Origin: Octopus sinensis
Lineage: Eukaryota
NCBI RefSeq assembly: GCF_006345805.1
Contig: NC_043014.1
Span: 49,104,001-49,168,000 of the forward strand
Direction of reading: 5' to 3'
Length of the DNA: 64,000 nt
Below are positions 4,992 to 60,870 of this stretch, piece by piece (the stretch's first letter is position 1; the number at the start of each line of letters is the position of its first letter). The position numbers and the translations under genes were made by a program. The notes beneath the pieces were generated by a model that searched no databases, was not told the DNA's origin, and was given only the letters and a program-made list of their open reading frames with translations.

Positions 4992-6394
4992 GATGAAGGA
5001 AGTAGAAGAGAATCGTATAGGGAGAGAATTAAAAGATTTCCAAATGTAATGGAAGAAAGTTTTGAGAAAGCCGAAGAAGGTTGGTCGTCTTTCTACAAAA
5101 AAGTAGAAAGTACGTTGAATAATGATATCTTATTTGGTTTAGAAGATGAGATTCGTCAAAAGAACGTCCTAGTATATATTCTGTGGCAGATGAACGATAA
5201 ATTTTCAGCTGAAAAATTAGCCAATGAAGTTCGAGAAAAGAAGCCAGATAACCTGGTGGCATTAACCAACCTTGCATTCATTCATTTGTACGATGGAAAT
5301 ATCCCTGAGGTAAGAAACCTTTTGGATAATCTAAGCAAGCTTGAAGAAAGAGAAAATTTCTCGCTGATAGAAGCAGAAGGCAAAAGAAATGTTGCTTATT
5401 GTTTAGCTACTATATCTTTTGAAGATCATGAAAGAGCTGTCGAAGATCATGAAAGAGCTGTAAAGAGAAAAGATGTGAAAATATTAAGGAATCAATACAG
5501 TACTTAGAGAAAATACGATGTGCTTTTCCACGCCATATTGATAAGGGCCTAATGGGAAGAACATTAGCATTGATTGGTTTGTTTCAACTTAGTCCTTATA
5601 ATTTTCATAGTCAACCAGCTAAAAAGTATTTTCAGAGAGCTCTTGATATTTCCCCTGATGACCGCTATGTTTTGGAGAAAAGTGCCTATCATTATATACG
5701 TTCATATCAGCATGAAGAAGGAAGAAAATTGCTTGAAAAAGCAATTGAAATAAAGGCAACATCATATTCTCATCATCAGCTTGGATTAGTTTATCTAAGA
5801 ATGAATACACCAAAATATACATATGTCCCAATGAACAAACAATTCTCAAAAGAAACGAATGTATTTGCGAAAGTTTTAAAACATGCTCAAAGTATTCCTC
5901 ATAGAGAAAGGAATGAGTTAATCAACAAAGCTGAATATCACTTTCAACAAGCTCTTGAACTTTCTCATGAATATTCACCTACTCTCTATGATATAATTTT
6001 ATTATATATGTCTTTGAAAGAATATGACAATGCCAGGAAGTATTGTGAAAGATTTAAAGCAGATAACACAAGGCAAGATGTTAATTTTTACATTTTGTTT
6101 GGAAAATTATGTTTTAAAGAAGCAGATGTAAAAAATGATGAAGAAGAAAAAGATCAATTAAGATGTACAGGAATGGATTGGTTTGTTCTGGCTCTTAAAT
6201 CTGCTGTAGAATTTCTTCCTTTCGACAAAGACCTGATAGAAATTTGGGAGATAAAGGAAATAATACTTGATTTATATGAGTATGGAAATGGAAATACTGA
6301 ATACAAAAAATTTGTTTTGGAATTCATTCAGTCAGTAGAAGACCTTGCCAATGACAAAGCGTTCCAAAATATACTTCACAAGAGTGAATTATAA
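4992..6394 (+). pseudogene. IFIT/TTC22-like TPR gene copy 1, large coding exon, frameshifted; its ATG exon lies left of the window
   Basis: Acceptor TTTTGTTTTTATTTCAG|GAT at 4991/4992. ORFs 4977-5507 and 5552-6394 together match the intact copy. A 95-bp deletion replaced by a 16-bp templated insert (5445-5460) shifts the frame. Confidence 0.9.
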
Positions 6395-7020: not shown

Positions 7021-7065
<45 letters not shown>

Positions 7066-16795: not shown

Positions 16796-16812
16796 TATAT
16801 ATATATATATAT

Positions 16813-24973: not shown

Positions 24974-26453
24974 GATGAAGGAAGTAGAAGAGAATCGTAT
25001 AGGGAGAGAATTAAAAGATTTCCAAATGTAATGGAAGAAAGTTTTGAGAAAGCCGAAGAAGGTTGGTCGTCTTTCTACAAAAAAGTAGAAAGTACGTTGA
25101 ATAATGATATCTTATTTGGTTTAGAAGATGAGATTCGTCAAAAGAACGTCCTAGTATATATTCTGTGGCAGATGAACGATAAATTTTCAGCTGAAAAATT
25201 AGCCAATGAAGTTCGAGAAAAGAAGCCAGATAACCTGGTGGCATTAACCAACCTTGCATTCATTCATTTGTACGATGGAAATATCCCTGAGGTAAGAAAC
25301 CTTTTGGATAATCTAAGCAAGCTTGAAGAAAGAGAAAATTTCTCGCTGATAGAAGCAGAAGGCAAAAGAAATGTTGCTTATTGTTTAGCTACTATATCTT
25401 TTGAAGATCATGAAAGAGCTGTCGAACTTTACAAAGAGTCTCTCAACGTTTGTCCAGACATTATCTGTGTATGTTTTCTATTGCTTTGTTGCAATATCGT
25501 TGTTTAAAAAAGAACATAGTAAAGAGAAAAGACGTGAAAATATTAAGGAATCAATACAGTACTTAGAGAAAATACGATGTGCTTTTCCACGCCATATTGA
25601 TAAGGCCCTAATGGGAAGAACATTAGCATTGATTGGTTTGTTTCAACTTAGTCCTTATAATTTTCATAGTCAACCAGCTAAAGAGTATTTTCAGAGAGCT
25701 CTTGATATTTCCCCTGATGACCGCTATGTTTTGGAGAAAAGTGCCTATCATTATATACGTTCATATCAGAATGAAGAAGGAAGAAAATTGCTTGAAAAAG
25801 CAATTGAAATAAAGGCAACATCATATTCTCATCATCAGCTTGGATTAGTTTATCTAAGAATGAATACACCAAAATATACATATGTCCCAATGAACAAACA
25901 ATTCTCAAAAGAAACGAATGAATTTGCGAAAGTTTTAAAACATGCTCAAAGTATTCCTCATATAGAAAGGAATGAGTTAATCAACAAAGCTGAATATCAC
26001 TTTCAACAAGCTCTTGAACTTTCTCATGAATATTCACCTGCTCTCTATGATATCATTTTATTATATATGTCTTTGAAAGAATATGACAATGCCAGGAAGT
26101 ATTGTGAAAGATTTAAAGCAGATAACACAAGGCAAGATGTTAAGTTTTACATTTTGTTTGGAAGATTATGTTTTAAAGAAGCAGATGTAAAAAATGATGA
26201 AGAAGAAAAAGATCAATTAAGACGTACAGGAATGGATTGGTTTGTTCTGGCTCTTAAATCTGCTGTAGAATTTCTTCCTTTCGACAAAGACCTGATAGAA
26301 ATTTGGGAGATAAAGGAAATAATACTTGATTTATATGAGTATGGAAATGGAAATACTGAATACAAAAAATTTGTTTTGGAATTCATTCACTCAGTAGAAG
26401 ACCTTGCCAATGACAAGGCGTTCCAAAATATACTTCACAAGAGTGAATTATAA
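24974..26453 (+). CDS. IFIT/TTC22-like TPR gene copy 2, large exon; two 1-bp deletions (~25460 and ~25520), pseudogene or sequencing error
   Basis: Acceptor TTTCAG|GAT. ORFs 24959-25507 and 25401-26453 reconstruct the protein. CCAGACATTAT replaces CCAGACGATTAT, and CATAGTAAAG replaces CATAGATAAAG. Confidence 0.8.
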
Positions 26454-26742: not shown

Positions 26743-27285
<543 letters not shown>

Positions 27286-32824: not shown

Positions 32825-33840
32825 GAATCTTTTCTGTTTGATGGACGGAATTTTCTAGTTAACTAAACAATTTCAAACTTCGTATACTGGTAGAATGTGT
32901 CAAAAGAAAACATTATTGTAAACAAAATTGAAAACAAAATTGTAATTCGTAACTTAAACGTAGTTTAATTTTACGAATTTTAACTCATGAAATCGCAGCA
33001 TTCGAGCTCAAATTATTTACTGCGTCTAAAAACTCACACACACACGTCTTATTCATCCTTGTCTCTTCTGTCTTCTACATGTGCTAGAAATAACAGCTAT
33101 ATCTCATCAATCGATGAATTTCGTCGCCCAATAAAAATATTAACGATATAGTTTTGAATATTTTCTTTACCTTTTTTTACCATGGTTTTGAAGGGACAGA
33201 AACAACAAAAACAAAACAATAATATGCCTAAATCGGTCTCGCGCGTGGAGTGTGAGTAGTATTGTAAAAATTTGCGAAATATTTTTTCATAAAAGGATGC
33301 CCCAGCTTGTCGGAAGCTGTGATATAAATTGGGAAAAAAATCCTCGACACCAGTGCGTAATTGGTACTTAATTTATCGACCCCGAAACGATGAAACATTG
33401 ACCCCTTCCCTTCTGGTTTATTTACCTTTTGTGCAAATTTGTTGCGGCAAGTGGCAAAACACGATCGTGTATGTGTGCGTATGTGTGAGTACGTATATGT
33501 CCGTTTGTATGTGTGTGTACGCTTATATATTAATTACTATGTGCTTGTGCAAATGTATATGCATGTGTTTGAGAGAGAGAGAGAGAGAATGTGTGTGTGT
33601 GTCGTGCGTCTGCTATATTTTTTTATCAATATCGATAACGCAGCAATGCTGGGATTTCATTGGTTAAAATTCGAAGATGTTGGGATTTCATTGGTTAAAA
33701 TTCGTAAAATTAAACTACGTTTAAGTTACAAATTACAATTTTGTTTACAATAATGTTTTCTTTTGACACATTCTACCAGTATACGAAGTTTCAAATTGTT
33801 TAGTTAACTAGAAAATTCATCCATCAAACAGAAAAGATCC
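32825..33840. mobile_element. hAT-like long-TIR element (unit 2); one flank copy only, no tandem expansion
   Basis: TSD CAATAGAG at 32817-32824 and 33841-33848. A ~30-bp duplication sits at the inner edge of the right TIR. Confidence 0.87.
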
Positions 33841-34361
33841 CAATAGAGAGATGTTTTACTTTCACTTTTGACACGTAATACCGGTTAAACCAGTATTCGA
33901 GTAGGTCAATGCGGAAGTAAAATGTTTTTACAGAAGTCTTTCACTTTTACTCATTTAGTTGGTGACATTAACGGGCGTTGATATTATTATCTGAGATTCC
34001 CAAAACAGTTTTTATTATTTCTTAATTATTTTACTTCTCCAATCTCGACTGTTTTACTTTATTAATCCCTTCACAACTTCCAGCATTCCAATAGGACCTG
34101 GTTTCCAGAGAGGAACACTTGCACAAAAGTGACACACTCTCTCTGTATATAATATTCGTTGCCATATATTTACCCTTCTGAGAAGCTTGGATAGAGATTG
34201 GATATAGATATTGACTGTTATTATTCATTATATCATTTCTACAAATTGACCTTTCTTCATTTCACGAATACAACAGAAAGCATAATTTCACAAAAAGAAA
34301 ACGTACAAATTTTGTTGTCCAAAGAAAATTTGCCTTTTTATACACACACAGCTATAAAGGA

Positions 34362-34391
34362 ATGGCTGAAGAAATGCAGGAAACTCTACAG
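34362..34391 (+). CDS. First coding exon of TPR gene copy 3 (MAEEMQETLQ)
   Basis: ATG, 10 codons, CAG|GTGAGT donor in phase 0. It joins the exon at 40375 to give an uninterrupted 505-aa protein. Confidence 0.82.
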
Positions 34392-34529
34392 GTGAGTATA
34401 TCAATATATACACTCGCTTGAACAAATGTACACTCTTTACTCTCTCTTTTACTTGTTTCAGTCATTTGACTGCGGCCATGCTGGAGCACCGCCTTTAATC
34501 GAGCAACTCGACCCCGGGACTTATTCTTA

Positions 34530-35827
34530 CGGAAGTCTTCACAATTCAAAATAGACTTGTTCAGCTTCCAGTACCTGGGTCCCTGTCTATGGCACTTATC
34601 TAATTGCACCCTACAAGTCACAAATTTGTGATCCGTGTAAGGCACAATGTGAAACTGTGGACAACTAAACGTATCCTTATCTCTTTTCCTAACGAATATC
34701 CAATCTATATACGATGTGTGAGCCGTCGTTGTTACACCACGTCCACTGTTAACGGTCCACTAGATCAAAGCTCTCTAGTAGACCCTTGAGGCTAGGTTTC
34801 CCCTTCCTATTGGTTGAGCCAACACTGTCGACCCGCGCTTCAAGGACAGTGTTAAAGTCCCCTACTAAGACTACCGTTTCGACGTCGCTAAAAAGGGCTC
34901 CAGATTCCGAAAAAAACCCGCCTGCCTACACTCATTCGGAGCGTAGACAGCTACCAACCTGAAGGACTGTTTACTTACGTGGGTCACATCCAGAACGACC
35001 AGCCTGCCTTCTGGGTCCAGAAAGACAGTACTTACCTGCAAGTCCAAGCTCTTCCTGATAAGGACTGTCACGCCTCTTCCTCTTCCTCGGCTAGGAGAAA
35101 TAAATTTCTCAAAACCATTTAGAAGAGGCGAGAACGCTTGGGCCCCGTTCATCTTGGACTCGGTTACAATAGCTACATCCACTCCGTGTGTCGTGAGGTC
35201 GTTCAGGAAATAAATTTGTTTCCATTTCGACCCCATTCCACGCACATTTACGCAACCCAGCTTTGCCATTGTCGGTGAGAGAAAAAATAAACAAAGTTAC
35301 GGTTGGAACAGGGAGCATGGCAGTTTAAATCTGCCTGCTTCCCCTTCTTCCTCCCTTGTGGTCGTAGCTGCAGGGCTCTTAACCGGCGTTGCCATCGGGC
35401 TCTGGGTAGGTGTGGTTGCCGGGGTTATAATAAGTTTACCCTCCAGTATTTCCTTTGTTACATCTCTTATAAGATTATTCTTTAAATGTTCTTGTAGTGT
35501 TTTTTCCTTCCACTCGTCTTCCTTTATTTTTGCGAAGCGAGTGGTTGATTTTGTGTCTGTAGACTTACTGAATAGTTTAACTTTTGAAAATTTGAAATAT
35601 TTGTACACCCTATCGTTCTTCTCGTCAAATGCTATAATCTTATCATTTTTTTTAAACAATTTTTTCAAATCTTGTTTTATGGGGAGGGGCTTGGCGAACT
35701 GTGTTCCAATGAATATAGTGCCGTGGGGGTAGGGCTGGGGAATTTGTTTTGTATGTATGTCTGCGGTGTTTGCTGATTTTTTCTTTGTTTGGGGAGGGGA
35801 GTCCAGAGTGTTATCTTTTTTTCTTTT
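34530..35827 (-). mobile_element. LINE remnant (ORF1 tail plus endonuclease only; RT removed by a ~2.6-kb deletion)
   Basis: Junction GGGACTTATTCTT|ACGGAAGTC at ~34529 fuses the SINE (equivalent of ~16553) to the LINE (equivalent of ~19135). Confidence 0.92.
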
Positions 35828-36935
35828 TCAAATTGTTTAGTTAACTAGAAAATTCCGTCCACCAAACAGAAAAGATCCCAATGGAGAGATGTTTTACTTT
35901 CACTTTTGACATGTGATATCGATTCACCAGTTTTCGAGTAGGTCAATGCGGAAGTAAAATGTCTTTACAGAAGTCTTTCACATTTACTCATTTAGTTGGT
36001 GACATTAACGGGCGTTGATATTATTATCTGAGATTCCCAAAACAGTTTTTATTATTTCTTAATTATTTTCCCTCTTCAATCTCGACTATTTTACTTTATT
36101 AATCCCTTCACAACTTCCAGCATTCCAATAGGACCTGGTTTCCAGAGAGGAACACTTGCACAAAAAGTGACACTCTCTCTGTATATAATATTCGTTGCCA
36201 TATATTTACCCTTCTGAGAAGCTTGGATAGAGATTGGTTACAAATTTAAGTTACAAATTACAATTTTGTTTACAATAATGTTTTCTTTTGACACATTCTA
36301 CCAGTATACGAAGTTTCAAATTGTTTAGTTAACTAGAAAATTCCGTCCATCAAACAGAAAAGATCCCAATAGAGAGATGTTTTACTTTCACTTTTGACAT
36401 GTGATATCGATTCACCAGTATTCGAGTAGGTCAATGCGGAAGTAAAATGTTTTTACAGAAGTCTTTCACATTTACTCATTTAGTTGGTGACATTAACGGG
36501 CGTTGATATTATTATCTGAGATTCCCAAAACAGTTTTTATTATTTCTTAATTATTTTCCCTCTTCAATCATTGGTTAAAATTCGTAAAATTAAACTACGT
36601 TTAAGTTACAAATTACAATTTTGTTTACAATAATGTTTTCTTTTGACACATTCTACCAGTATACGAAGTTTCAAATTGTTTAGTTAACTAGAAAATTCCG
36701 TCCATCAAACAGAAAAGATCCCAATAGAGAGATGTTTTACTTTCACTTTTGACATGTGATATCGATTCACCAGTATTCGAGTAGGTCAATGCGGAAGTAA
36801 AATGTTTTTACAGAAGTCTTTCACATTTACTCATTTAGTTGGTGACATTAACGGGCGTTGATATTATTATCTGAGATTCCCAAAGCAGTTTTTATTATTT
36901 CTTAATTATTTTACTTCTCCAATCTCGACTGTTTT
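35828..36935. repeat. Intronic TIR+IRF-site array (3 copies) with a GAS-containing spacer
   Basis: AAAAGATCCC at ~35875, ~36362 and ~36717. Confidence 0.9.
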
Positions 36936-37470
36936 AGAATTTTAGAATTTTATCGTAACACAACCATAATAAGAGAAGAATAACCGATCCTAGATTTGGT
37001 AGCGTAGCATCATCTAGTTATTAGCTTTCGAAAATGTTGTGGGGAAAATGAATTCCATTGTTTATTTAAATGGTTTTTCAGTTTCATTAAACACACATAC
37101 ACAAATGTATATACACTCTCACACGTTCTCCAGAGTCTACAGTGGGGTATACATACTCACGCACGCACACAGTCGAGTAATGGTAAAGGGTGTGCGTGTG
37201 CACACGCACACACGCAGAGTCAGAAACGCACGCACACACTTGATCGGGCGTGCGCACACAAAAACACACTCTCACACATACACACACAGAATGTCTTCAA
37301 TCTTATGCATTGTCAACTTGCGAAATACTTCTTACGTAGAATCTTTCCACAATAGAAAAGTTTCAAATTTTCTAAATAACCGATCCAATTTCTTTTCGAA
37401 CCTATGATAAATTTGATAACCTGATATTATCCAAGCAATTACCCAAGCTACTAGAGGTCAAAAACTCCCT

Positions 37471-37893
37471 GGGATCTTTTCGGTTTGAACGGCAGTTTTT
37501 AACATAATTTCTAGGTAACTAAAAAAATTTAAACTTCGTATACTGGTAGAATGTGTTTATAAAACATCTTTTTCTCTTGGCTTTATTGAGAAAATTCTAT
37601 AGTTTGTAAGATATTTGTTGTTTTTTTTCTTCAATTTCTGCAATTTCAACCAATCAGTGACGTCTATTGAGTTAAAAAGCATTGTGTGCCGTATGAATAT
37701 GTCCCTCGTTTAAGAAACAGATTGGGTTTATTTACATTTGTGAAGAAAAAAAAGATACCCTTCAACCACCCCTAACTAACCCTAACCCTAAAACAGATTG
37801 AAATGCAATAGATCGATACAAGGGTCATAATTTTGGGTGACAATTTCATATGAAACCGCTAGAAAAAACTGCCGTTCAAACCGAAGAGATCCC
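37471..37893. mobile_element. GGGATC-TIR MITE (unit 3)
   Basis: Paralogue of 2106-2528. Confidence 0.85.
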
Positions 37894-38769
37894 AAGCTGC
37901 TGCTAGTCTTATGACCGCTACAACAGCAATCAAAAAGATTCATGTTCTGTCGTGTTTTCGTGAGAAAAAAAAAATGGACATCGAAGGGGAATAAATCTTT
38001 TATGGTTTGTGTATGATAGTTAAGGAAAGGTTGCCATGATGAATAAAACACGGGAGACAATATATACGTGTGTTCCACAGAGTAATTTCCCTTGAAATGA
38101 AATTGTAAAATTCCTTTTCTCTGTATTAAAATCGAGGGCAGCGTTTATATCTCTAACTTTTTAGTATAGTGATGCAATTTTATAGAAGACTAGCAGTATA
38201 ACCCGGCGTTGCTCGGGTTTCTTTCGACCCTTTAGGATTGGAATTTTTGAAAGCTACAAATTTTGCATTATGTAGCTTGTTATTCTCTGAACATTTTTCT
38301 GGTAGAAATACACTGAGAAATGGCGACAGAGCAGTCAAAAAAAATCGTCAAAATTAGGGATTTTCATAGAAAAAAAGCACCTTTTTGATGTTAACATGCT
38401 CCGATTTGAATTTTTTCTTCTACGGAAGGAAGAGCAAGCCTTCTTCTATCATACTCTCAATTTTGGTCAACTTGTGCCGCAGGGTCTCAGAGGAGATAGT
38501 GTCAGTTGAAGGCTACCAAACCTGCCATACACAGACAACTTCAGCTTTATATAGAGAGAGATTAATTGTACAGAAATATATAATTTCGCTGCTTTTCGGA
38601 GACGCGCGCACTCACACATGTATGTATATATGAATATGTATAAATGTGTAGGTGAAAGTGTTTGTGTGCGTGTATATGTGTGTGTTATATACTTATAGGC
38701 GTAGTTGTGCGGTAAAAAGGTTGTTTCTCAACCCTGTGCCACTTGGTTCGATTTCAGTTTCCGCCTATA

Positions 38770-39999
38770 CAGGGGTTGGACAAAATAATGGAAACACCTT
38801 AACGTTTCAAACAAATTTATTTTGATATGGCAGTAATTTTGATATCTGGCAGTAAGTACAAGTTGAATTCTATGAGATATGGACTTGTACAAAGTTTGAA
38901 TTCTTTCCAAAGGAATTTTGTTCAAACAGTCTCCAGTTCTTGTAGTGATGATAGTGGAGGATATCGGCTCCTTCCTTATTTTTCTAAAATGCACAATAAG
39001 TGTTCTATAATATTGAGACCTGGGGACTGTGGTGGCCATATAAGATGTTCAACCTCACTAAAATGTTCCTCGTACCATTCAGTAACAACTTTAGCTGTGT
39101 GAATTGGTGCATTATCATTCTGAAAGATTGCATTTCGCATCCAGAAACAATTCTGCAACCATTGGATGAATTTGATCAGATAAAATGCTTCAATAATCTT
39201 GACTATTAATTCTGCCATGAAGGAAAATCATTGGGCCAGCGGATTTCCAAGATATAGCCCCCAAAGCTCATCATTGCAGATCCTCTTCCATGTTTAATAA
39301 AAGAAAGCAGTCTGGGTCAAATGCTTCTTTTGGCTGACTCCACAAGTACACTCAGTGGTCGGAAAAAAGGTAAAGGATGACTCGTCCGAGAAAATAACAT
39401 TCATCCACTGCTCTGGGGACCAATTCTGTAGATTTTTACTCCACTCTAAACGCTTTGCAACGTTTGTTTTTGAAAGTAGTGGTTTTCTTGACTGTAGCCC
39501 TCCCTTGAAATCCTGCCTTTTGTAGCTCCCGGTGAACTGTTCTTGTGGAAACTGGATTCTCGAGGTGGTCATTAAGCTCTACAGTAATTTAGGGAGCTGT
39601 ACTTTTGTGATTCTTTCTAATAATTCGCATAAGAATCCAACGGTCCCTATCTGGAAGTTTTGGTTTTCTTCTGGAGTTTTGTTTCAACGAGGAGGTTTGT
39701 TTCCTCTTTCTCAAAGGCTGTCATTACTTTCAAGACTTCTTGATACACCAAACATTTCAGCTGTTTTCGTTATGCTAGCGCCAGCTATACGAGCACCAAC
39801 AATTTGACCGCTTTGAAAGTCCGATAGATCTGTCATCTTAATGAATTTTAATTACCTTATTTTGATGATATCTGAAAAGAAAAAGCAATTTTAGCAAAAC
39901 ATATTAAGCAACACTAATAATAAATCAAAAAACGTTTTGACGGTTTTATAAATATCTCAAAATTATGATGTTATGATGCTAGGTGTTTCCATTATTTTT
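38770..39999 (-). mobile_element. Degenerate Tc1 transposon (unit 3), the least decayed copy
   Basis: WMNVIFSDESSFTFF in ORF 39294-39572. Retains 18 bp (~39557-39575) that the other three copies lack. Confidence 0.9.
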
Positions 40000-40374
40000 G
40001 CGCGTGTGTGTATGTGTGTGTGAGAGAGTGTTATATCATATTATATTACATAATTTAAGTGATCTACAACAGCCTGTCCATCTTGTTGTTGTTGTCGTTG
40101 TTGTTGCTGCTGATGATGATGATGATGCATTTATCACTCTGTCAAACACACCTCTTACATTGTTCTCTCACTTATTTACGCTCAGTTTTCTGTGCGCATA
40201 TTAAAAACATCGAACATTCGGATCCAAAATGCTCAGCCACTACATCAACCATATCAGACTAGGAAGGTTTGACATTGTTTCATTAACTAAAAATCGAAAA
40301 TTGGAGAATATTTTTTTGTCAATGGTAATGTGTGATATCATATTTCATACGCAATCATTTTGTTTTTATTTCAG

Positions 40375-41862
40375 GATGAAGGAAGTAGAAGAGAATCGTA
40401 TAGGGAGAGAATTAAAAGATTTCCAAATGTAATGGAAGAAAGTTTTAAGAAAACCAAAGAAGATTGGTCGTCTTTCTACAAAAAAGTAGAAAATTCGTTG
40501 AATAAAGATATCTCATTTGGTTTAGAAGATGAGATTCGTCAAAAGAACGTCCAAGTATATATTCTTTGGCAGATGAAAGATAAATCCAAAGCTGAAGAAT
40601 TAGCCAGTGAAGTTCGAGAAAAGAAGCCAGATAACCTGGTGGCATTAACCAGCCTTGCATTCATTCATTTGAACAATGGAAATATCCCTGAGGTAAGAAA
40701 CCTTTTGGATGATCTAAGTAATCTTGAAGAAAGAGAAAATTTCTCGCTGATAGAAGCAGAAGGCAAAAGAAATGTTGCTTATTGTTTAGCTACTATATCT
40801 TTTGAAGATCATGAAAGAGCTGTCGAACTTTACAAAGAGTCTCTCAACGTTTGTCCGGATGATTATCTGTGTATGTTTTCCATTGCTCTGTTGCAATATC
40901 GTTGTTTAAGAAAGAACATAGATAAAGAGAAAAGATGTGAAAATATTAAGGAATCAATACAGTACTTAGAGAAAATACAATGTGCTTTTCGACAACATAA
41001 TAACAAGGCCCTAATGGGAAGAACATTAGCATTGATTGGTTTGTTTCAACTTAGACCTTATAATTTTCATAGTCAAGTAGCTGAAGAGTATTTTCAGAGA
41101 GCTCTTGATATTTCCCCTGATGACCCCTATGTTTTGGAGAAAAGTGGCAATCATTATATACTTTCAAAGCAGCTTGAAAAAGCAAGAAAAGTGCTTGAAA
41201 AAGCAATTGAAAAAAAGGCAACACCATATTCTCATCATCAGCTTGGGTTACTTTATCTAAGAGATGAGAACCCTACATATACATATGTCCCAGTGAACAA
41301 ACAATTCTCAAAAGAAACGAATGAATTTGCGAAATTTTTAAAACCTCCTCAAAATATTCCTGATAGAGAAAGGAATGAGTTAATCAACAAAGCTGAATAT
41401 CACTTTCAACAAGCTCTTGAACTTTCTTATAGATATTCACCTGCTCTCTATGATATCATTATATTATATATGTCTTTGAAAGAATATGACAATGCCAGGA
41501 AGTATTGTGAAAGATTTAAAGCAGATAATATAATGCAAGATGTTAATTATTACATTTTGTTTGGAAAATTATATTTTAAAGAAGCAGATGTAAAAAATGA
41601 TGAAGAAGAAAAAGATCAATTAAGACGTACAGGAATGGATCGGTTTGTTCGGGGTCTTGAATCTGCTGTAGAATTTCTTCCTTTCAACAAAGACCTGATA
41701 GAAATTTGGGAGATAAAGGAAATAATACTTGAAATATATGAGTATGGAAATGGAAATGGAAATACTGAATACAAAAAACGTGTTTTGGAAATCATTCAGT
41801 CAGTAGAAGACCTTGCCAATGACAAAGCGTTCCAAAATATACTTCACAAGAGTGAATTATAA
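40375..41862 (+). CDS. IFIT/TTC22-like tetratricopeptide-repeat protein, copy 3, large exon, intact (495 aa; 505 aa with exon 1)
   Basis: Open frame from the acceptor TTTCAG|GAT to TAA. Recurrent TPR-type helices: NLVALTSLAFIHL, ERAVELYKESLNVCPDD, AEEYFQRALDISPDDPYVLEK, ARKVLEKAIE...YSHHQLGLLY, AEYHFQQALELS...ALYDIIILY...EYDNARKY. The spacing resembles IFIT and TTC22 N-terminal repeats, judged by eye. Confidence 0.9.
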   Translation, partial: DEGSRRESYRERIKRFPNVMEESFKKTKEDWSSFYKKVENSLNKDISFGLEDEIRQKNVQVYILWQMKDKSKAEELASEVREKKPDNLVALTSLAFIHLNNGNIPEVRNLLDDLSNLEERENFSLIEAEGKRNVAYCLATISFEDHERAVELYKESLNVCPDDYLCMFSIALLQYRCLRKNIDKEKRCENIKESIQYLEKIQCAFRQHNNKALMGRTLALIGLFQLRPYNFHSQVAEEYFQRALDISPDDPYVLEKSGNHYILSKQLEKARKVLEKAIEKKATPYSHHQLGLLYLRDENPTYTYVPVNKQFSKETNEFAKFLKPPQNIPDRERNELINKAEYHFQQALELSYRYSPALYDIIILYMSLKEYDNARKYCERFKADNIMQDVNYYILFGKLYFKEADVKNDEEEKDQLRRTGMDRFVRGLESAVEFLPFNKDLIEIWEIKEIILEIYEYGNGNGNTEYKKRVLEIIQSVEDLANDKAFQNILHKSEL

Positions 41863-42151
41863 AAGATAAATTGTGTTCATACTTTTCTTATTACTTTCTT
41901 TATTGATAATACTCAACAATATTTTGAAATTCATTGTTATATATCTCACGTTTTCTGAAGTAATACCAAACACGTTTATCTAAAGCTAAATTTTAAAAAT
42001 CATATAAATTTAGACTACTCCTTTCTTTGAAACACAAGATGAATGTAGCAAAGAATTCTACAGGAAATATTACTGCCTTTGTAATGGATGTGGCCCTGAA
42101 ACCAACGTTGAAATGACGTCAGAGCATTCAAAGGATGACGTCATAACTAAC

Positions 42152-42648
42152 TTTCATTTTGACATATTTTAACATCCCCAAACAGTGAAGAAGTGGCAGA
42201 AAATATTGGAATGAATCTAGAGATATGTTTTTGCTTGAAAGTTCCATTTGATAATCGTAACTACATATTGGGATGATGTAAAACTGGAAACCTTTGCATT
42301 ATACTGAAACATCGTTGGAATATTGGAATTCTATAAGTAACAATCAAAAATTACTAATTTACACAAAAGACACCAAGTAAATCCTTGAAGATTGACAACC
42401 TAAGTAAGGACGACATTTTACTATCAGGAAGCATGAAGCCAAAAATTCCAAAACATTTAAAAAGTTTTCCTCAATTTAAATGGCAATGTGGAGAGAGAGA
42501 GAGAGAGAGAGAGAGGAGAGGGAGGGGGAGAGAGAGAGTGAGAGAGAGAGAGAGAGGGAGGGGGAGAGAGAGAGTGAGAGAGTGAGAGAGAGAGAAAGAG
42601 AGAGAGAGAGAGATGAATAGTTTTAGTTTCCTTTGCAGACTATATTAG
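42152..42648 (+). pseudogene. Decayed TIR-like relic (copy 3)
   Basis: Same sequence and same lesions as 6684-7136. Confidence 0.55.
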
Positions 42649-48189: not shown

Positions 48190-49204
48190 GAATCTTTTCT
48201 GTTTGATGGACGGAATTTTCTAGTTAACTAAACAATTTCAAACTTCGTATACTGGTAGAATGTGTCAAAAGAAAACATTATTGTAAACAAAATTGAAAAC
48301 AAAATTGTAATTCGTAACTTAAACGTAGTTTAATTTTACGAATTTTAACTCATGAAATCGCAGCATTCGAGCTCAAATTATTTACTGCGTCTAAAAACTC
48401 ACACACACACGTCTTATTCATCCTTGTCTCTTCTGTCTTCTACATGTGCTAGAAATAACAGCTATATCTCATCAATCGATGAATTTCGTCGCCCAATAAA
48501 AATATTAACGATATAGTTTTGAATATTTTCTTTACCTTTTTTACCATGGTTTTGAAGGGACAGAAACAACAAAAACAAAACAATAATATACCTAAATCGG
48601 TCTCGCGCGTGGAGTGTGAGTAGTATTGTAAAAATTTGCGAAATATTTTTTCATAAAAGGATGCCCCAGCTTGTCGGAAGCTGTGATATAAATTGGGAAA
48701 AAAATCCTCGACACCAGTGCGTAATTGGTACTTAATTTATCGACCCCGAAACGATGAAACATTGACCCCTTCCCTTCTGGTTTATTTACCTTTTGTGCAA
48801 ATTTGTTGCGGCAAGTGGCAAAACACGATCGTGTATGTGTGCGTATGTGTGAGTACGTATATGTCCGTTTGTATGTGTGTGTACGCTTATATATTAATTA
48901 CTATGTGCTTGTGCAAATGTATATGCATGTGTTTGAGAGAGAGAGAGAGAGAATGTGTGTGTGTGTCGTGCGTCTGCTATATTTTTTTATCAATATCGAT
49001 AACGCAGCAATGCTGGGATTTCATTGGTTAAAATTCGAAGATGTTGGGATTTCATTGGTTAAAATTCGTAAAATTAAACTACGTTTAAGTTACAAATTAC
49101 AATTTTGTTTACAATAATGTTTTCTTTTGACACATTCTACCAGTATACGAAGTTTCAAATTGTTTAGTTAACTAGAAAATTCATCCATCAAACAGAAAAG
49201 ATCC
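48190..49204. mobile_element. hAT-like long-TIR element (unit 3); one flank copy only
   Basis: TSD CAATAGAG at 48182-48189 and 49205-49212. Confidence 0.87.
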
Positions 49205-49726
49205 CAATAGAGAGATGTTTTACTTTCACTTTTGACACGTAATACCGGTTAAACCAGTATTCGAGTAGGTCAATGCGGAAGTAAAATGTTTTTACAGAAG
49301 TCTTTCACTTTTACTCATTTAGTTGGTGACATTAACGGGCGTTGATATTATTATCTGAGATTCCCAAAACAGTTTTTATTATTTCTTAATTATTTTACTT
49401 CTCCAATCTCGACTGTTTTACTTTATTAATCCCTTCACAACTTCCAGCATTCCAATAGGACCTGGTTTCCAGAGAGGAACACTTGCACAAAAAGTGACAC
49501 ACTCTCTCTGTATATAATATTCGTTGCCATATATTTACCCTTCTGAGAAGCTTGGATAGAGATTGGATATAGATATTGACTGTTATTATTCATTATATCA
49601 TTTCTACAAATTGACCTTTCTTCATTTCACGAATACAACAGAAAGCATAATTTCACAAAAAGAAAACGTACAAATTTTGTTGTCCAAAGAAAATTTGCCT
49701 TTTTATACACACACAGCTATAAAGGA

Positions 49727-49777
49727 ATGGCTGAAGAAATGCAGAAAATAACTGGGGAAATGCAGGAAATTCTACTG
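49727..49777 (+). CDS. First coding exon of TPR gene copy 4 (MAEEMQKITGEMQEILL)
   Basis: Identical to 16367-16417, with a phase-0 GTGAGT donor. Confidence 0.8.
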
Positions 49778-50170
49778 GTGAGTATATCAATACATACACT
49801 CGCTTGAACAAATGTACACTCTTTACTCTCTCTTTTACTTGTTTCAGTCATTTGACTGCGGCCATGCTGGAGCACCGCCTTTAATCGAGCAACTCGACCC
49901 CGGGACTTATTCTTTTGTAAGCCCAGTACTTATTCTATCGGTCTCTTTTGCCGAACCGCTAGGTAACGGGGACATCGGTTGTCATGCACACACACTCAAA
50001 CATATACATATATACGACGGGCTTCTTTCAGTTTCCGTTTACCAAATCACAAGGCTATAGTAGAAGACACTTGCCCAAGATGCCATGCAGTGGGACTGAA
50101 CCCGGAGCCATGTGGTTGGTAAGCATGCTACTTACCACACAGCCACTCCAGCGCCTATATATATATATAT

Positions 50171-53100
50171 CGTCCCAGATGCGATAACACTTGTTCTGCG
50201 TAACTTATCAAGTCTGACAACTTCCGACAGTGTACAAAAGCGTGCTGGACGGTTTCATCGTCCAACCCGCATCTTGGACAAGTCGGTGGCACTGAAATTC
50301 CGTGCCGCGATAACTTCTCGCGAACAGGTAAAGCATTCCTATAACACTGCCAGGCCAGGGATCTTTGGAAATTATCCAAATACCCCGTCCTGAAAGTCTT
50401 TTTAAACAGGTTGGTAAGCTGGTCTTCGTCAAACCCCAGAGCCCCTCCTAGGACGTCGTCGTTCTTTGCCTCTACCAGCCTGCTATAAAATACCGAGGTG
50501 GTATTTCCGCAGCCGGCCTTGCCCGCCTTGTGGATCAGCGTGAGTGCCTGTCGGCACTCCTTTTGCCATAAAGTCAGATTCCGTCTTTTGATGCGACCGG
50601 GTTTAAAATTCACTAAGGAAGCCGGTCTCGGGAAAAATTCCCCTGCCAGCGGACTCCACACCTTATCACCCTCCAGGTGGTGCCAGAGATGCTTCAGCCT
50701 CAACGCATGCCTGCGCATCATCAACCAAGGCATTCCTAACCCACCCTTTAACGGTTCCTGGCAGCAAACGGAGCGCCTCACAAGTGGCTTTCCTCCCTTC
50801 CACAAAAAGCGGAAAAGGATTCGCTCCAACTTGCTAAGCCATGAATCGGGGCAAGGGACAGCGGTCAGGCGGTAAGTGATTACAGATGCAATGAACATCT
50901 GCTCCACCTCCGCCCTTCCTTTCAAGGACAGAGACCTTCCGGACCAGGTCCGTACTATGGCCTCCACCTTGTTCGTCACCTCACTCCAATTCCTCTCCGT
51001 TTGGGAGTCTGACCCAAACCAAACTCCTAGCAACTTAACACTGGACGATATCGACTTGCTCCTCCAGGTGCCGAGGCGCAAGCCAACCGACTTGTCCTTG
51101 TTAACCCTTGCTCCTGCCACCGCCTCGTATCCTCTGATAGCATCTTCTACACAAGGTAGCTGGGCCTCATTGGACACGATGAGGGTGACGTCATCCGCAT
51201 AAGCAGTAACCGTCCTCCCACCTCCGATCTCATCCGGGTTACTTCCCAGCCTCTCCAACTTTCGCAGCAATGGCTCGAGAGCCAACACGTATAAAAGTGG
51301 TGACAAGAGGCACCCTTGACGAACTGAACATTCGATCGAAAACGGTTCCGTTAGGTATCCGTTTATCTGGACGGTGGACTTGATGCCGTTATACATAGCG
51401 GAGATCCAACCGCGAAATTCAGGGCCCAGTCCAGCCGCTTCGAGGACCGTCGCCAGGTACTTATGGTCTACCCTATCGAACGCTTTACTTTGGTCTAAAT
51501 GGACCATTACCCCGCCCTTGCCGGTTAATTTACCCACCCTATCTAAGGTGTAGCGTATAAGGTGAATATTGTCCTGGATCGACCTGCCTGGAATTGCACA
51601 TGTCTGTGCTTTCCCTACAAGTTTCTCCACGACAATCGTCAACCTTTTTGCCAACACCTTGGCCAAAATCTTTAACTCTACATTAAGTAAAGTTATGGGC
51701 CTGTAATTACTAATGTTATCCCCCTTGCTCGGGTCTTTCTGGATTAGCGTCACAACTCCCTGGCTTACAGAACTGGGAATTCTCCCATTCTGCTGCCAGT
51801 TCGCGTAGACGCTTGCCATTATTCCCCCGAACAAGTCCGGCATACTTTGGTAAAACTCGTAGGGCAGACCATCCAACCCCGGCGACTTCTCCCCGGCGCA
51901 TCCAGCCAGTATCCCCTCTATCTCCGCGGGAGTGATCGCTCCTTCACAGCACTCCACCTCACGCCCCGAGAGCCGCGGTCCGCCGGCTAGGAAGTCCTTT
52001 AAGGCCCTCCCCCGTTCCGGCGCCACACCACCCCCGAACACGCGGGCGAAATGATGGTGAAGAAACTTTTGCATCTCCTCCGGTCCATAGATCTTTTGTC
52101 CCTGTTCGTCAGTTAAAGACTTGATTGAAGCTTTGTTACCTCTCTGACTCTCCACTCGACGGGCCCATCCGGCAACGTTAATACCTTCTCGTTTCCCAGC
52201 GCGTAGCTTAGCTCTGACTCTGCAACCTTCGTGTTTGGAGTTAAGGTGACGGTACAATACCGTCCTTGCCGCCATCACTCCGGATGCAGAGCCAGCTTCC
52301 ATTGCCTCGTTTAGATTCTTAACTAAATTGTCCTCTATCCTAGACCTATCTAACCTTAGCTGATTGCTAAATCTAATGGACTCTGAACGAATGGCTCTTT
52401 TGAGGGAGTGCCACCATCTATTGTTAATGATGGTGCCACACAATGCCCTCTGTACTAACACCTTAATCCGGGTACGGAAGTCTTCACAATTCAAAATAGA
52501 CTTGTTCAGCTTCCAGTACCCGGGTCCCTGTCTATGGCACTTATCTAATTGCACCCTACAAGTCACAAATTTGTGATCCGTGTAAGGCACAATGTGAAAC
52601 TGTGGACAACTAAACGTATCCTTATCTCTTTTCCTAACGAATATCCGATCTATATACGATGTGTGAGCCGTCGTTGTTACTCCACGTCCACTGTTAACGG
52701 TCCACTAGATCAAAGCTCTCTAGTAGACCCTTGAGGCTAGGTTTCCCCTTCCTATTGGTTGAGCCAACACTGTCGACCCGCGCTTCAAGGACAGTGTTAA
52801 AGTCCCCTACTAAGACTACCGTTTTCGACGTCGCTAAAAAGGGCTCCAGATTCCGAAAAAAACCCGCCTGCCTACACTCATTCGGAGCGTAGACAGCTAC
52901 CAACCTGAAGGACTGTTTACTTACGTGGGTCACATCCAGAACGACCAGCCTGCCTTCTGGGTCCAGAAAGACAGTACTTACCTGCAAGTCCAAGCTCTTC
53001 CTGATAAGGACTGCCACGCCTCTTCCTCTTCCTCGGCTAGGAGAAATAAATTTCTCAAAACCATTTAGAAGAGGCGAGAACGCTTGGGCCCCGTTCATCT

Positions 53101-53773
53101 TGGACTCGGTTACAATAGCTACATCCACTCCGTGTGTCGTGAGGTCGTTCAGGAAATAAATTTGTTTCCATTTCGACCCCATTCCACGCACATTTACGCA
53201 ACCCAGCTTTGCCATTGTCGGTGAGAGAAAAAATAAACAAACTTACGGTTGGAACAGGGAGCATGGCAGTTTAAATCTGCCTGCTTCCCCTTCTTCCTCC
53301 CTTGTGGTCGTAGCTGCAGGGCTCTTAACCGGCGTTGCCATCGGGCTCTGGGTAGGTGTGGTTGCCGGGGTTATAATAAGTTTACCCTCCAGTATTTCCT
53401 TTGTTACATCTCTTATAAGATTATTCTTTAAATGTTCTTGTAGTGTTTTTTCTTTCCACTCGTCTTCCTTTATTTTTGCGAAGCGAGTGGTTGATATTGT
53501 GTCTGTAGACTTACTGAATAGTTTAACTTTTGAAAATTTGAAATATTTGTACACCCTATCGTTCTTCTCGTCAAATGCTATAATCTTATCATTTTTTTTA
53601 AACAATTTTTTCAAATCTTGTTTTATGGGGAGGGGCTTGGCGAACTGTGTTCCAATGAATATAGTGCCGTGGGGGTAGGGCTGGGGAATTTGTTTTGTAT
53701 GTATGTCTGCGGTGTTTGCTGATTTTTTCTTTGTTTGGGGAGGGGAGTCCAGGGTGTTATCTTTTTTTCTTTT
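50171..53773 (-). mobile_element. L1/Tx1-clade LINE, inactive; 811-codon open RT segment
   Basis: Same motifs as 16813-20432. The endonuclease is separated from the RT by the shared stop and frameshift at ~52590-52695. The 3' end is cut at a (TA)n tract. Confidence 0.95.
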
Positions 53774-58674: not shown

Positions 58675-60155
58675 GATGAAGGAAGTAGAAGAGAATCGTA
58701 TAGGGAGAGAATTAAAAGATTTCCAAATGTAATGGAAGAAAGTTTTGAGAAAGCCGAAGAAGGTTGGTCGTCTTTCTACAAAAAAGTAGAAAGTACGTTG
58801 AATAATGATATCTTATTTGGTTTAGAAGATGAGATTCGTCAAAAGAACGTCCTAGTATATATTCTGTGGCAGATGAACGATAAATTTCAGCTGAAAAATT
58901 AGCCAATGAAGTTCGAGAAAAGAAGCCAGATAACCTGGTGGCATTAACCAACCTTGCATTCATTCATTTGTACGATGGAAATATCCCTGAGGTAAGAAAC
59001 CTTTTGGATAATCTAAGCAAGCTTGAAGAAAGAGAAAATTTCTCGCTGATAGAAGCAGAAGGCAAAAGAAATGTTGCTTATTGTTTAGCTACTATATCTT
59101 TTGAAGATCATGAAAGAGCTGTCGAACTTTACAAAGAGTCTCTCAACGTTTGTCCAGACGATTATCTGTGTATGTTTTCTATTGCTTTGTTGCAATATCG
59201 TTGTTTAAAAAAGAACATAGATAAAGAGAAAAGACGTGAAAATATTAAGGAATCAATACAGTACTTAGAGAAAATACGATGTGCTTTTCCACGCCATATT
59301 GATAAGGCCCTAATGGGAAGAACATTAGCATTGATTGGTTTGTTTCAACTTAGTCCTTATAATTTTCATAGTCAACCAGCTAAAGAGTATTTTCAGAGAG
59401 CTCTTGATATTTCCCCTGATGACCGCTATGTTTTGGAGAAAAGTGCCTATCATTATATACGTTCATATCAGAATGAAGAAGGAAGAAAATTGCTTGAAAA
59501 AGCAATTGAAATAAAGGCAACATCATATTCTCATCATCAGCTTGGATTAGTTTATCTAAGAATGAATACACCAAAATATACATATGTCCCAATGAACAAA
59601 CAATTCTCAAAAGAAACGAATGAATTTGCGAAAGTTTTAAAACATGCTCAAAGTATTCCTCATATAGAAAGGAATGAGTTAATCAACAAAGCTGAATATC
59701 ACTTTCAACAAGCTCTTGAACTTTCTCATGAATGTTCACCTGCTCTCTATGATATCATTTTATTATATATGTCTTTGAAAGAATATGACAATGCCAGGAA
59801 GTATTGTGAAAGATTTAAAGCAGATAACAAAATGCAAGATGTTAATTTTAACATTTTGTTTGGAAGATTATGTTTTAAAGAAGCAGATGTAAAAAATGAT
59901 GAAGAAGAAAAAGATCAATTAAGACGTACAGGAATGGATAGGTTTGTTCTGGCTCTTAAATCTGCTGTAGAATTTCTTCCTTTCAACAAAGACCTGATAG
60001 AAATTTGGGAGATAAAGGAAATAATACTTGATTTATATGAGTATGGAAATGGAAATACTGAATACAAAAAATTTGTTTTGGAATTCATTCACTCAGTAGA
60101 AGACCTTGCCAATGACAAAGCGTTCCAAAATATACTTCACAAGAGTGAATTATAA
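58675..60155 (+). CDS. IFIT/TTC22-like TPR gene copy 4, large exon; one 1-bp deletion in a T-run at ~58885, possibly an error
   Basis: ORFs 58660-58902 and 58938-60155. GATAAATTTCAG here versus GATAAATTTTCAG in copies 1 and 2. Confidence 0.82.

Positions 60156-60787: not shown

Positions 60788-60870
<83 letters not shown>

Follow-up and report, generated by a model that had tools for sequence, protein, structure and literature searches.

The IFIT genes consist of two exons, of which the first coding exon is very short, and they occur in tandem clusters. The coding exons of snake PLA2 genes reportedly evolve faster than their introns and UTRs (Nakashima et al. 1993/1995), and the multigene family of cone-snail conopeptides is said to show accelerated coding evolution relative to its non-coding DNA (Conticello et al. 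2001). In the MHC class I and II genes, introns have reportedly been homogenised by recombination, and the peptide-binding exons are said to keep old diversity (Cereb, Hughes and Yang 1997). Mammalian IFIT1 has undergone positive selection and recombination with IFIT1B (McDougal et al. 2025, PMC12543323); for the IFIT1/IFIT1B locus this paper cites Daugherty et al. 2016, which we quote in that form. The zebrafish NLRs form a large lineage-specific innate-immune array with gene conversion and positive selection (PMC4852459).

Here we describe a tandem array of IFIT-like genes in an octopus, in which the coding exon of the single intact copy of the region is far more diverged than the DNA around it. 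A literature search returned nothing specific on octopus or mollusc IFIT arrays. The window, that is, the whole stretch of 64,000 nucleotides that was analysed, corresponds to Octopus sinensis chromosome CM016876.1:49,104,001-49,168,000, and positions are counted from its first base.

Organization of the array

The window contains four copies of IFIT-like TPR genes, which belong to a tandem array of at least 5 units in 105 kb. The repeat units are 15-20 kb long and differ structurally in their LINE content. An active-looking LINE reverse transcriptase is also located in the array. Among the four copies of the window only copy 3 has an intact reading frame, which encodes an IFIT-like TPR protein; all copy 3 features given here and below lie on the + strand. 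Its exon 1 (34362..34391) encodes MAEEMQETLQ, which matches the N-terminus of the NCBI model P0003, and is followed by a GTGAGT donor. Intron 1 (34392..40374) spans about 6 kb, includes a truncated LINE and 325-bp repeats, and is 1.4-1.7% diverged from the other units. The CDS of exon 2 (40375..41862), with 495 codons and a stop, starts at GAT after the acceptor tttcag. Compared with exon 1 of copy 2 (16367-16417) and copy 4 (49727-49777), exon 1 of copy 3 lacks 21 bp, which leaves the frame intact, and carries 2 nonsynonymous changes, and the 600-bp promoter region around these differences is otherwise identical to copies 2 and 4.

Copies 1, 2 and 4 are frameshifted pseudogenes, a point overlooked in an earlier sequence-only reading of this DNA. 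Exon 2 of copy 1 (4992..6394, + strand) has lost 79 bp after 5459 and shows an 18-bp duplication there, and its first stop is at 5505. Copy 2 (24974..26453, + strand) carries 1-bp deletions after 25459 and 25518, with the first stop at 25505, and copy 4 (58675..60155, + strand) a 1-bp deletion in a T run after 58887, with the first stop at 58900.

The octopus short forms arose by truncation of a longer protein that has an additional C-terminal domain. A relic of this domain (41945..42486) follows the copy 3 CDS, with 45-50% amino acid identity to the C-terminus of the long paralogue P0014 (L007); it contains stops and a frameshift common to all four copies and is now non-coding 3' sequence. 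The extra domain of the long paralogues matched no Pfam family and no PDB sequence, and a search for its homologues was empty; distant relatives of 700-900 amino acids display TPR families alone in Pfam. A TIR-like identity of this domain was a by-eye impression that no search confirmed, and its single-sequence AF2 model (pLDDT 35) was unusable.

Copy 3 encodes a putative IFIT-family protein

A phmmer search against PDB revealed human IFIT5 as the top and sole match below 1e-6 (E=1.6e-7, residues 87-404 against 93-388), and the match of the octopus protein to vertebrate IFITs is weak, at about 15-16% identity. The automatic NCBI names in the family are IFIT5-like and IFIT1B-like. When the AF2 model of the copy 3 protein (pLDDT 91.9, pTM 0.88) was compared with PDB by Foldseek, the best 14 matches were all IFIT1 or IFIT5 (E 3e-10 to 2e-9, TM 0.55-0.65, about 500 aligned columns), whereas generic TPR proteins reached an E of 1e-6 or worse, about 1000-fold poorer. 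By sequence homology, and by a predicted full-length, all-helical TPR clamp fold, the copy 3 protein appears to be a member of the IFIT family. The gene structure is IFIT-like as well, with an exon 1 of 10-17 codons, an exon 2 of 495 codons and tandem units.

In IFIT5, binding of 5'-triphosphate and cap RNA involves K150, R186, Y250, R253, Y254, R260 and Q288 (PMC9677429 Table 5). According to the phmmer alignment, in which residue equivalence is uncertain because identity is only 16%, R186 (R176 in the octopus protein), Y250 (Y252) and H287/Q288 (H288/Q289) are kept, whereas K150, R253, Y254 and R260 are changed to T140, E255, K256 and I262, respectively. The canonical GAAANNGAAA (ISRE) is absent from the 600 bp upstream of copy 3 exon 1. 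Each 325-bp promoter repeat contains the IRF-element-like AAAAGTGAAAG two times, and 29 were found in the window against 0.13 expected. To our knowledge, octopuses and other cephalopods have no interferon genes.

Divergence of the coding exon and its flanks

Comparison of copy 3 (40375-41862) with copy 4 (58675-60155) showed 68 amino-acid-changing and 10 synonymous-only codons among the 491 comparable ones. A 6-bp insertion private to copy 3 (41744..41749), an additional GGAAAT unit, adds 2 amino acids. The CDS is 6.16% diverged (91/1478) and the 7.4 kb of flanks 1.23% (91/7396), a difference of about 5-fold, and the 620 bp downstream of the stop contain exactly 10 substitutions. In 300-bp sliding windows a peak of 4-10% is confined by the CDS, with the first difference at 40447 and the last at 41799, and the intron and the 3' side remain at 0-2.5%. 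The CDS begins with 72 bp and ends with 60 bp that are free of substitutions, and the core divergence island (40447..41799) contains 91 substitutions in 1353 bp (6.7%). The differences are clustered, as indicated by the variation of their spacing (CV 1.42 vs 0.95 for random placement, p=4e-4) and by the number of pairs at most 3 nt apart (33 observed vs 15.9 expected), and 14 codons differ at two or more positions, including two from the 6-bp insertion. A similar island of CDS divergence is present between two O. vulgaris paralogues. Four private silent changes of copy 3 are clustered at codons 161-172, and protein-level selection leaves this cluster unexplained.

These data confirm the counts of the sequence-only reading, which had given about 69 replacement and 10 silent codons with a 2-residue insertion, about 10 substitutions in some 620 bp past the stop, an exon more diverged than its flanks and a patchy distribution of the changes; the sliding-window comparison that it proposed agrees. 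Its neutral expectation of about 3:1 was too low for this AT-rich gene, in which 1190 N sites and 286 S sites give 4.2:1, so the codon ratio of 6.8:1 corresponds to an omega of about 1.4-1.6 and not of about 2.3. For copies 1 and 2 we recovered its count of 9 replacement and 2 silent changes over the last 280 codons, but not its interpretation as selection, since 9:2 is exactly neutral and both copies are pseudogenes.

Nonsynonymous sites are 6.7% diverged (p=9e-26 against the flanks) and synonymous sites 4.2%, which is 3.4 times the flank value (p=4e-4). Because the silent sites also exceed the flanks, the exon lineage is older than its homogenised flanks, and the contrast between exon and flanks is partly a matter of age and not of selection. 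An older-paralogue origin with raised dS had been named in advance as evidence against the selection reading, and in part this is what the silent sites reveal.

The raised dN and dS of the CDS, the excess of adjacent substitutions and the active-looking LINE reverse transcriptase of the array would also be compatible with a mutational process that targets the coding exon, either error-prone repair, as proposed for cone-snail toxins, or reverse transcription of edited mRNA. We disfavour this mechanism as highly improbable. The 540 bp of relic coding sequence past the stop, located in the same exon and transcript, differ by 1.6% between copies 3 and 4, which is the level of the flanks, so that only the live CDS shows the excess; the pseudogene copies of the exon are not accelerated either. 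The transition:transversion counts (42:49 in the CDS vs 52:39 in the flanks) do not differ significantly, and A>G changes (11 vs 5) show no marked excess. Since the substitution spectrum is that of the flanks, no special mutator is required.

Concerted evolution and gene conversion

In the upstream 1.5 kb the O. sinensis units differ by 0.5-2.0% among themselves and by 2.6-3.6% from the O. vulgaris units Ov_a and Ov_b. Paralogues within the species are thus closer than units of different species, indicating that the flanks are homogenised by concerted evolution, in agreement with the sequence-only reading. The sister copy c6 (L001), 56 kb downstream, is copy-3-like on both sides of the stretch equivalent to 41529..41791 of copy 3, and inside it 15/16 informative sites match copy 1. 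This 270-bp conversion tract shows directly that gene conversion occurs in the array. The NJ trees of the four gene quarters are also discordant, with copy 3 paired with different partners.

A wrongly assembled haplotype or a stretch rich in errors might be suspected in a repetitive array assembled from long reads, in which the frameshift of copy 4 lies in a T homopolymer. The copy 3 states, however, recur exactly in c6, an independent copy (0 differences over about 1.2 kb at a distance of 56 kb), the units differ from each other in LINE structure, and the changes leave the frame open and respect conserved sites, so that we consider an artefact extremely unlikely.

The clustered changes of copy 3 may instead have been copied in as a patchwork by short conversion tracts from unsampled diverged paralogues. 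Such an import is suggested by the strong clustering with its many adjacent changes, by the 14 multi-position codons (two of them the 6-bp insertion), by the differing partners of copy 3 in the segment trees, by the real tract in c6 and by the private cluster of four silent changes. Moreover, about half of the differences (classed as 'ambiguous', 38.8 N and 6.2 S) recur in one or another paralogue of O. vulgaris or O. bimaculoides. On the other hand, 45 amino-acid states and 8 silent codons occur in none of the 9 family sequences except copy 3 and c6, and the densest patch (codons 258-270) has no silent differences in its unchanged codons, where a diverged donor should leave some. The long paralogue P0014 of the same genome was rejected as donor: it matches the copy-3-private residues at 3 sites only, and its nucleotides agree with copy 4 at 47 sites vs 24 with copy 3. 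We therefore regard patchwork import as unlikely on these points, although it is compatible with the explanation that we favour below, because shuffling and selection both belong to the latter.

Evolutionary rate and tests of selection

The Tajima relative-rate test, with O. bimaculoides as outgroup, revealed 59 copy-3-specific vs 25 copy-4-specific changes (p=2e-4), and the polarised changes of the upstream flank numbered 13 vs 9. The strictly polarised synonymous changes are asymmetric, with 6 vs 0. As no orthologue of the copy 3 type was found among the annotated O. vulgaris proteins, the age of the copy 3 lineage is estimated from dS alone (about 12 events). The changes of copy 3 hit the three codon positions nearly evenly (24, 20, 15) and fall preferentially at positions where other paralogues vary (OR 5.3, p=6e-10). 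The probability that no stop codon would arise after 59-84 neutral substitutions is 0.045-0.012.

Selection was analysed by maximum likelihood in 9 family sequences, 7 of them for the site models, with our own implementation rather than PAML or HyPhy, which was validated with only 5 null simulations, and on a poorly resolved tree (ΔlnL <2.5 between topologies). The gene-wide omega of copy 3 ranged from 1.33 to 2.16 by method (Fisher p=0.069). The pairwise ML estimate was 1.46 (p=0.245), and the branch model gave 1.47-1.49 (p=0.24-0.26 vs 1, and p=0.15 vs the background of 0.87). Gene-wide dN/dS of copy 3 is thus not significantly higher than 1 (p=0.07-0.26). The branch-site test on copy 3 yielded a 2ΔlnL of 6.8-7.7 (p=0.003-0.009), which fell to 0.14 (p=0.71) when the 12 codons with two or more nucleotide changes and the two insertion codons were masked. 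The branch-site signal of copy 3 rests wholly on multi-nucleotide codons.

For the family as a whole, the site models supported a class of codons with omega above 1 (2ΔlnL 51.2 for M1a/M2a, 52.1 for M7/M8 and 51.1 for M8a/M8), which comprises about 7% of the codons at an omega of 6.5-6.7; about one third of the codons are strongly conserved and more than half are neutral. This class is robust to recombination: with segment-specific trees the gene quarters gave 2ΔlnL of 19.2, 10.8, 19.3 and 5.6 (sum 54.9, 8 df, p=5e-9), and five recombinant null simulations gave 0.0-6.1. The fast codons lie chiefly at residues 226-270, 297 and 352-356, and they take in the copy 3 changes at residues 72, 251, 258, 263, 297, 352 and 354. 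In the alignment with IFIT5, the hypervariable residues 258-270 correspond to the helix bearing the RNA-binding residues R253, Y254 and R260 (PMC9677429), and the alignment offers a lead that the variable codons may be ligand-contact surfaces, for which they are candidates.

The diversifying selection proposed from the sequence is hence partly supported. It is found in the family-wide site class, and neither the gene-wide omega nor the masked branch-site test of copy 3 reveals it; the formal dN/dS estimates of 1.3-2.2 lie above 1 as point values without reaching significance.

These results also bear on the hypothesis that copy 3 represents an old exon lineage under relaxed constraint, which drifts at an omega of 1 without positive selection after its flanks were homogenised. 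An omega indistinguishable from 1 and from the background, the loss of the branch-site signal after masking, the elevated dS and the nearly even use of codon positions are all in accordance with such drift. Nevertheless, the frame stayed intact through 59-84 substitutions when each of the three neighbours became frameshifted, family-invariant sites were avoided, and the fast codon class of the family includes seven copy 3 residues. Over an equal time span the copy 3 lineage has also changed 2.4 times as fast as that of the pseudogene, and neutrality is therefore insufficient. We consider relaxed constraint rather unlikely.

Proposed evolution of the array

The array has probably evolved by birth and death of its copies, with shuffling by conversion and diversifying selection on a minority of codons, as one would anticipate for a binding protein that faces pathogens. 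Unequal crossing-over and gene conversion would hold the non-coding DNA of the units 98-99% alike, and the copy 3 CDS, with two thirds of c6, would represent an older exon lineage that escaped homogenisation. This lineage may have gained some 60-80 substitutions, evolving about 2.4 times as fast as the pseudogene lineage next to it, with a protein-level rate that would be neutral or slightly higher (omega about 1.5). The selected minority of codons may include the helix whose homologue in human IFIT5 belongs to the RNA cleft. We infer that selection, and not chance, protects the CDS from homogenisation; the target may be a pathogen ligand such as RNA, and copy 3 itself has possibly been positively selected.

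Two more far-reaching variants seem quite improbable to us. In one of them the live CDS would be diversified by a dedicated process confined to the ORF and rich in adjacent multi-nucleotide changes, which raises silent and replacement sites alike and would parallel in cephalopods the hypervariability suggested for cone-snail toxins. In the other, selection against homogenisation would maintain an IFIT-type arms race in an animal without interferon, with short forms derived from a truncated sensor-plus-effector protein.

Under birth and death with conversion and selection on few codons, copy 3 would be a putative, expressed-looking candidate gene in a field, cephalopod antiviral immunity, that is almost uncharted, and about 10 hypervariable residues would be candidates for RNA or viral-protein binding. 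The flanks, the dead relic domain and the sister pseudogenes provide internal neutral controls for coding evolution. The data also call for caution in genome scans, as a raw 7:1 ratio of replacement to silent changes in an AT-rich gene means an omega of about 1.5 only, and branch-site signals may depend entirely on multi-nucleotide codons.

Comparison with known gene families

Rapidly evolving immune arrays with concerted evolution are already well known, and the advance made here is taxonomic and not conceptual. Venom families share with the octopus array a coding sequence more diverged than introns and UTRs among recent paralogues, dN equal to or higher than dS, and clustered substitutions. 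The conopeptides are a mollusc system too, whereas the octopus IFIT-like protein, unlike venom components, is not a secreted toxin. As in the MHC, an old, mainly nonsynonymous exon island lies within younger homogenised non-coding DNA; the MHC case, however, involves alleles of one locus under balancing selection, and the octopus pattern is seen between tandem paralogues, most of which are decaying. The zebrafish NLRs have likewise expanded in tandem in a species-specific manner, with gene conversion and with positive selection on ligand-binding domains of the repeat type, but they belong to another domain family and the octopus array is far smaller.

Like mammalian IFIT1/IFIT1B, the octopus genes, which have a short exon 1 followed by a single long coding exon, form a tandem cluster of IFIT-fold TPR genes in which copies are gained and lost and paralogues exchange sequence by recombination and gene conversion; M7/M8-type models detect a small class of positively selected codons in both. 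They differ from mammalian IFITs in an identity of only about 15-16%, in the apparent lack of conservation of K150, R253, Y254 and R260, in short forms truncated from a longer protein, and in being an array known so far from its sequence. As a whole, the pattern fits that of known immune families, in which protein diversity is kept and non-coding DNA is repeatedly homogenised.

Structure of the array and identity of its genes

The DNA of the window is AT-rich and eukaryotic, and is built of tandem units of 15–20 kb that are 97–99% alike. A locus (L002) retrieved through an exact protein match agrees 100% with window 24362–52172 and puts the window at Octopus sinensis GCA_006345805.1, chromosome CM016876.1:49,104,001–49,168,000. 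Each unit carries one two-exon gene: exon 1 has 10–17 codons (starting at 16367, 34362 and 49727 in copies 2, 3 and 4), and an intron of 6–9 kb is followed by a single long exon after a tttcag acceptor. The product of copy 3 (CDS 40375–41862) has only TPR matches in Pfam, and among PDB sequences human IFIT5 matches it best (E=1.6e-7). The top 14 structural neighbours of its AF2 model (pLDDT 91.9) are IFIT1/IFIT5 (TM 0.55–0.65), with E-values about 1000-fold better than those of generic TPR proteins. Close relatives of the protein come from Octopus species only, and NCBI names for relatives include 'IFIT5-like' and 'IFIT1B-like'. The gene is therefore called IFIT-like: it resembles IFIT genes in fold, exon structure and clustered arrangement, and keeps only part of the RNA-binding residues.

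Among the four copies only copy 3 is intact, a point overlooked in the sequence-only reading. Copy 1 (4992–6394) has a 79-bp deletion after 5459 and a premature stop at 5505; copy 2 (24974–26453) has lost single bases after 25459 and 25518, with a premature stop at 25505; copy 4 (exon 2, 58675–60155) lacks 1 bp of a T run after 58887, which could be a homopolymer assembly error, and has a premature stop at 58900. In the NCBI annotation copies 2 and 4 are stubs of 194 and 92 aa. The lesions are independent, each copy having its own, and therefore the ancestor shared by these B-type copies (the exon lineage of copies 1, 2 and 4) was intact.

The 540 bp after each stop (6477–7018, 26536–27077, 41945–42486 for copy 3, and 60244–60791) are the decayed remnant of an extra C-terminal domain, with stops and one frameshift common to all four copies. 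The long paralogues P0012 and P0014 retain this domain, of roughly 230 aa, intact (relic match E about 1e-30). The short genes are thus truncated forms of a longer protein that joined the TPR part to the extra domain, and the relic is an ideal neutral control within the same exon as the live CDS. The domain looks TIR-like by eye, for which Pfam, PDB, homologue search and AF2 gave no confirmation. The NCBI model of copy 3 (P0003; 41540–42170) joins codon ~390 (...KADNIMQD) by a splice to the dead relic and leaves out some 105 codons at the end of the open frame, probably an annotation artefact of protein-guided modelling.

The units also carry a non-LTR retrotransposon (endonuclease, reverse transcriptase and zf-RVT) in intron 1 of copies 4 (50155–53215, − strand) and 2 (16695–19874, − strand). 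The former has an uninterrupted 811-aa RT ORF (50155–52590), the latter is frameshifted, and that in the copy 3 intron (about 34528–35270) is truncated at a unit junction (34528). A 325–355-bp repeat forms tandem runs directly before exon 1 and, once more, within intron 1 (15019–16060, 20850–21530, 33688–34056, 36245–36924, 49052–49420, 54191–55227 and others). Each repeat unit has two CTTTCACTTTT (reverse complement AAAAGTGAAAG, IRF-element-like). This motif occurs 29 times in the window, always on the + strand, where 0.13 occurrences would be expected. Downstream of each copy, a (GA)n microsatellite (42490–42640; homologous sites 7022–7095, 27081–27250 and 60790–60865) has a length that varies among units, by as much as about 100 bp.

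Divergence of the coding exon and its flanks

Copies 3 and 4 are 6.16% diverged in the CDS versus 1.23% over 7,396 flank positions. The sliding-window check proposed by the sequence-only reading places a peak of 4–10% from 40447 to 41799, within the CDS, with 0–2.5% on either side. The hand counts of that reading were accurate: of 491 codons, 68 carry a replacement and 10 only silent changes, the 2-aa insertion corresponds to 6 bp private to copy 3 (41744–41749), the 620 bp that follow the stop contain exactly 10 substitutions, and over the last 280 codons 9 replacement and 2 silent codons separate copies 1 and 2. Nonsynonymous sites are 6.7% diverged, 5.5-fold above the flanks (p=9e-26), and synonymous sites 4.2%, 3.4-fold above them (p=4e-4). 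This exon/flank feature is real and statistically strong. Since two O. vulgaris paralogues show the same island (exon 4.4% vs upstream 1.5%), it belongs to the family at large and not to copy 3 alone. A mutator targeted at the CDS is an unlikely source, since the adjacent relic domain remains at flank level (1.6%), the spectrum is like that of the flanks (ts:tv 42:49 vs 52:39, no significant difference) and the exons of the pseudogene copies evolve slowly.

Exon 1 of copy 3 (34362–34391), compared with copies 2 and 4 (16367–16417 and 49727–49777), lacks 21 bp in frame and carries two amino-acid replacements (I>T, L>Q), while the 600 bp upstream equal copy 4 except for one indel; it is coding-only divergence in miniature.

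Upstream flanks differ by 0.5–2.0% among O. sinensis units and by 2.6–3.6% from O. vulgaris units. Being closer within the species, they have been homogenised since speciation, as the proposal of concerted evolution had held. The dS of B-type copies against O. vulgaris is 3.0–5.4%, and the exon divergence of copy 3 (dS 4.2–4.8%) appears to be at least as old as the O. sinensis/O. vulgaris split.

Tests of positive selection

The comparison of copies 3 and 4 has 1190 nonsynonymous and 286 synonymous sites, a neutral ratio of 4.15:1 instead of the roughly 3:1 assumed previously. The 9:2 of copies 1 and 2 equals this ratio and is thus not evidence for selection. A dN/dS well above 1 had also been expected for copy 3; omega is above 1 numerically (NG86 1.42, with dN 0.068 and dS 0.048; YN00 1.33; Biopython ML 2.16; our GY94/F3x4 pairwise fit 1.46) but not significantly so (LRT against 1, p=0.245; Fisher test on site counts, p=0.069). 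A two-ratio branch model gave omega 1.47–1.49 for copy 3 (p=0.24–0.26 versus 1; p=0.15 versus a background of 0.87). Across the family, omega is 0.7–1.9 in every pair and 0.96 under M0.

Site models fitted to seven sequences with our own implementation gave 2ΔlnL of 51.2 (M1a/M2a), 52.1 (M7/M8) and 51.1 (M8a/M8). The fit puts 33% of sites in a class with omega near 0, 59% in one with omega 1 and 7% in one with omega about 6.6, and the candidate selected sites are 72, 187, 226, 236, 251, 258, 263, 297, 352, 354 and 356. With a separate NJ tree per gene quarter the statistics were 19.2, 10.8, 19.3 and 5.6 (sum 54.9 on 8 df, p=5e-9), and five M1a data sets simulated on four discordant segment trees and analysed on a single tree yielded 0.0–6.1. 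Since the signal holds with segment trees and null simulations, diversifying selection is supported at the level of the family. A genealogy-free lower-bound count within the two sister species found 171 replacement and 30 silent events (ratio 1.37, p=0.05). Selection on copy 3 in particular is not supported: a branch-site test that took this copy as the foreground (2ΔlnL 6.8–7.7, p=0.003–0.009; top position codon 297, a triple change ATG>GAT) fell to 0.14 (p=0.71) after masking of 12 codons with at least two differences and the two codons of the 6-bp insertion.

Lineage-specific change and gene conversion

Most differences arose on the copy 3 side, with 59 copy-3-specific versus 25 copy-4-specific changes when O. 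bimaculoides is the outgroup (p=2e-4) and 69–76 versus 15–21 with O. vulgaris copies; the upstream flank is split evenly (13 vs 9). A long paralogue as outgroup gives 47 versus 24, which excludes import from it into copy 3. Private to copy 3 are 45 amino-acid states and 8 silent codons, compared with 13–18 and 1–7 for the O. vulgaris copies. Many of these states occupy positions invariant in all other copies of the three species (e.g. RQHNN 206–210, PP..N..D 324–330 and RG.E 426–429); copy-3 changes are nonetheless enriched at family-variable sites (OR 5.3, p=6e-10). Its frame is still open, with a probability of only 0.045–0.012 under 59–84 neutral hits.

The sister copy c6 (P0001; L001 9944–11425 = CM016876.1:49,196,932–49,198,413), 56 kb downstream, equals copy 3 without difference for about 1.2 kb, a stretch that takes in two thirds of the CDS. 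It reproduces the copy-3 states, which makes an assembly artefact an unlikely origin for them. Across 41529–41791, 15 of its 16 informative sites have the copy 1 state, and beyond them the sequence is of copy-3 type again: c6 is a mosaic, and its copy-1-like tract of about 270 bp is direct evidence for conversion. It also has seven private replacements (e.g. E279K, A282V, N338T, Y342N) and silent differences at codons 291, 347 and 385. The partner of copy 3 is discordant among the NJ trees of the four gene quarters.

Short conversions into copy 3 from unsampled array members would explain the clustering of its differences (spacing CV 1.42 vs 0.95; 33 adjacent pairs vs 15.9) and its four private silent changes at codons 161–172, but the unchanged codons of the densest replacement patch carry no silent differences. 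These four changes, shared with c6, fall within 32 bp (40857–40888), in a stretch with an amino-acid change in no family member, and may mark a short conversion whose donor was a paralogue outside the sample.

Comparison with known systems

In a phmmer alignment, the hypervariable patch 258–270 corresponds to the helix of IFIT5 residues 249–262. Mutation of IFIT5 Y250, R253, Y254 or R260 strongly reduces RNA binding (PMC9677429, Table 5). In the same alignment copy 3 keeps counterparts of R186 (R176), Y250 (Y252) and H287/Q288 (H288/Q289), and K150, R253, Y254 and R260 are without conserved ones. The patch as a putative ligand contact is a lead.

Exons that evolve faster than introns are classical in venom gene families and MHC. 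We found no literature on octopus IFIT-like arrays. For mammalian IFIT1, PMC12543323, citing Daugherty 2016, describes positively selected codons together with recombination with a tandem paralogue. The octopus array shows the same pairing of selected codons and paralogue recombination, and is best read as an invertebrate case of an already known phenomenon.
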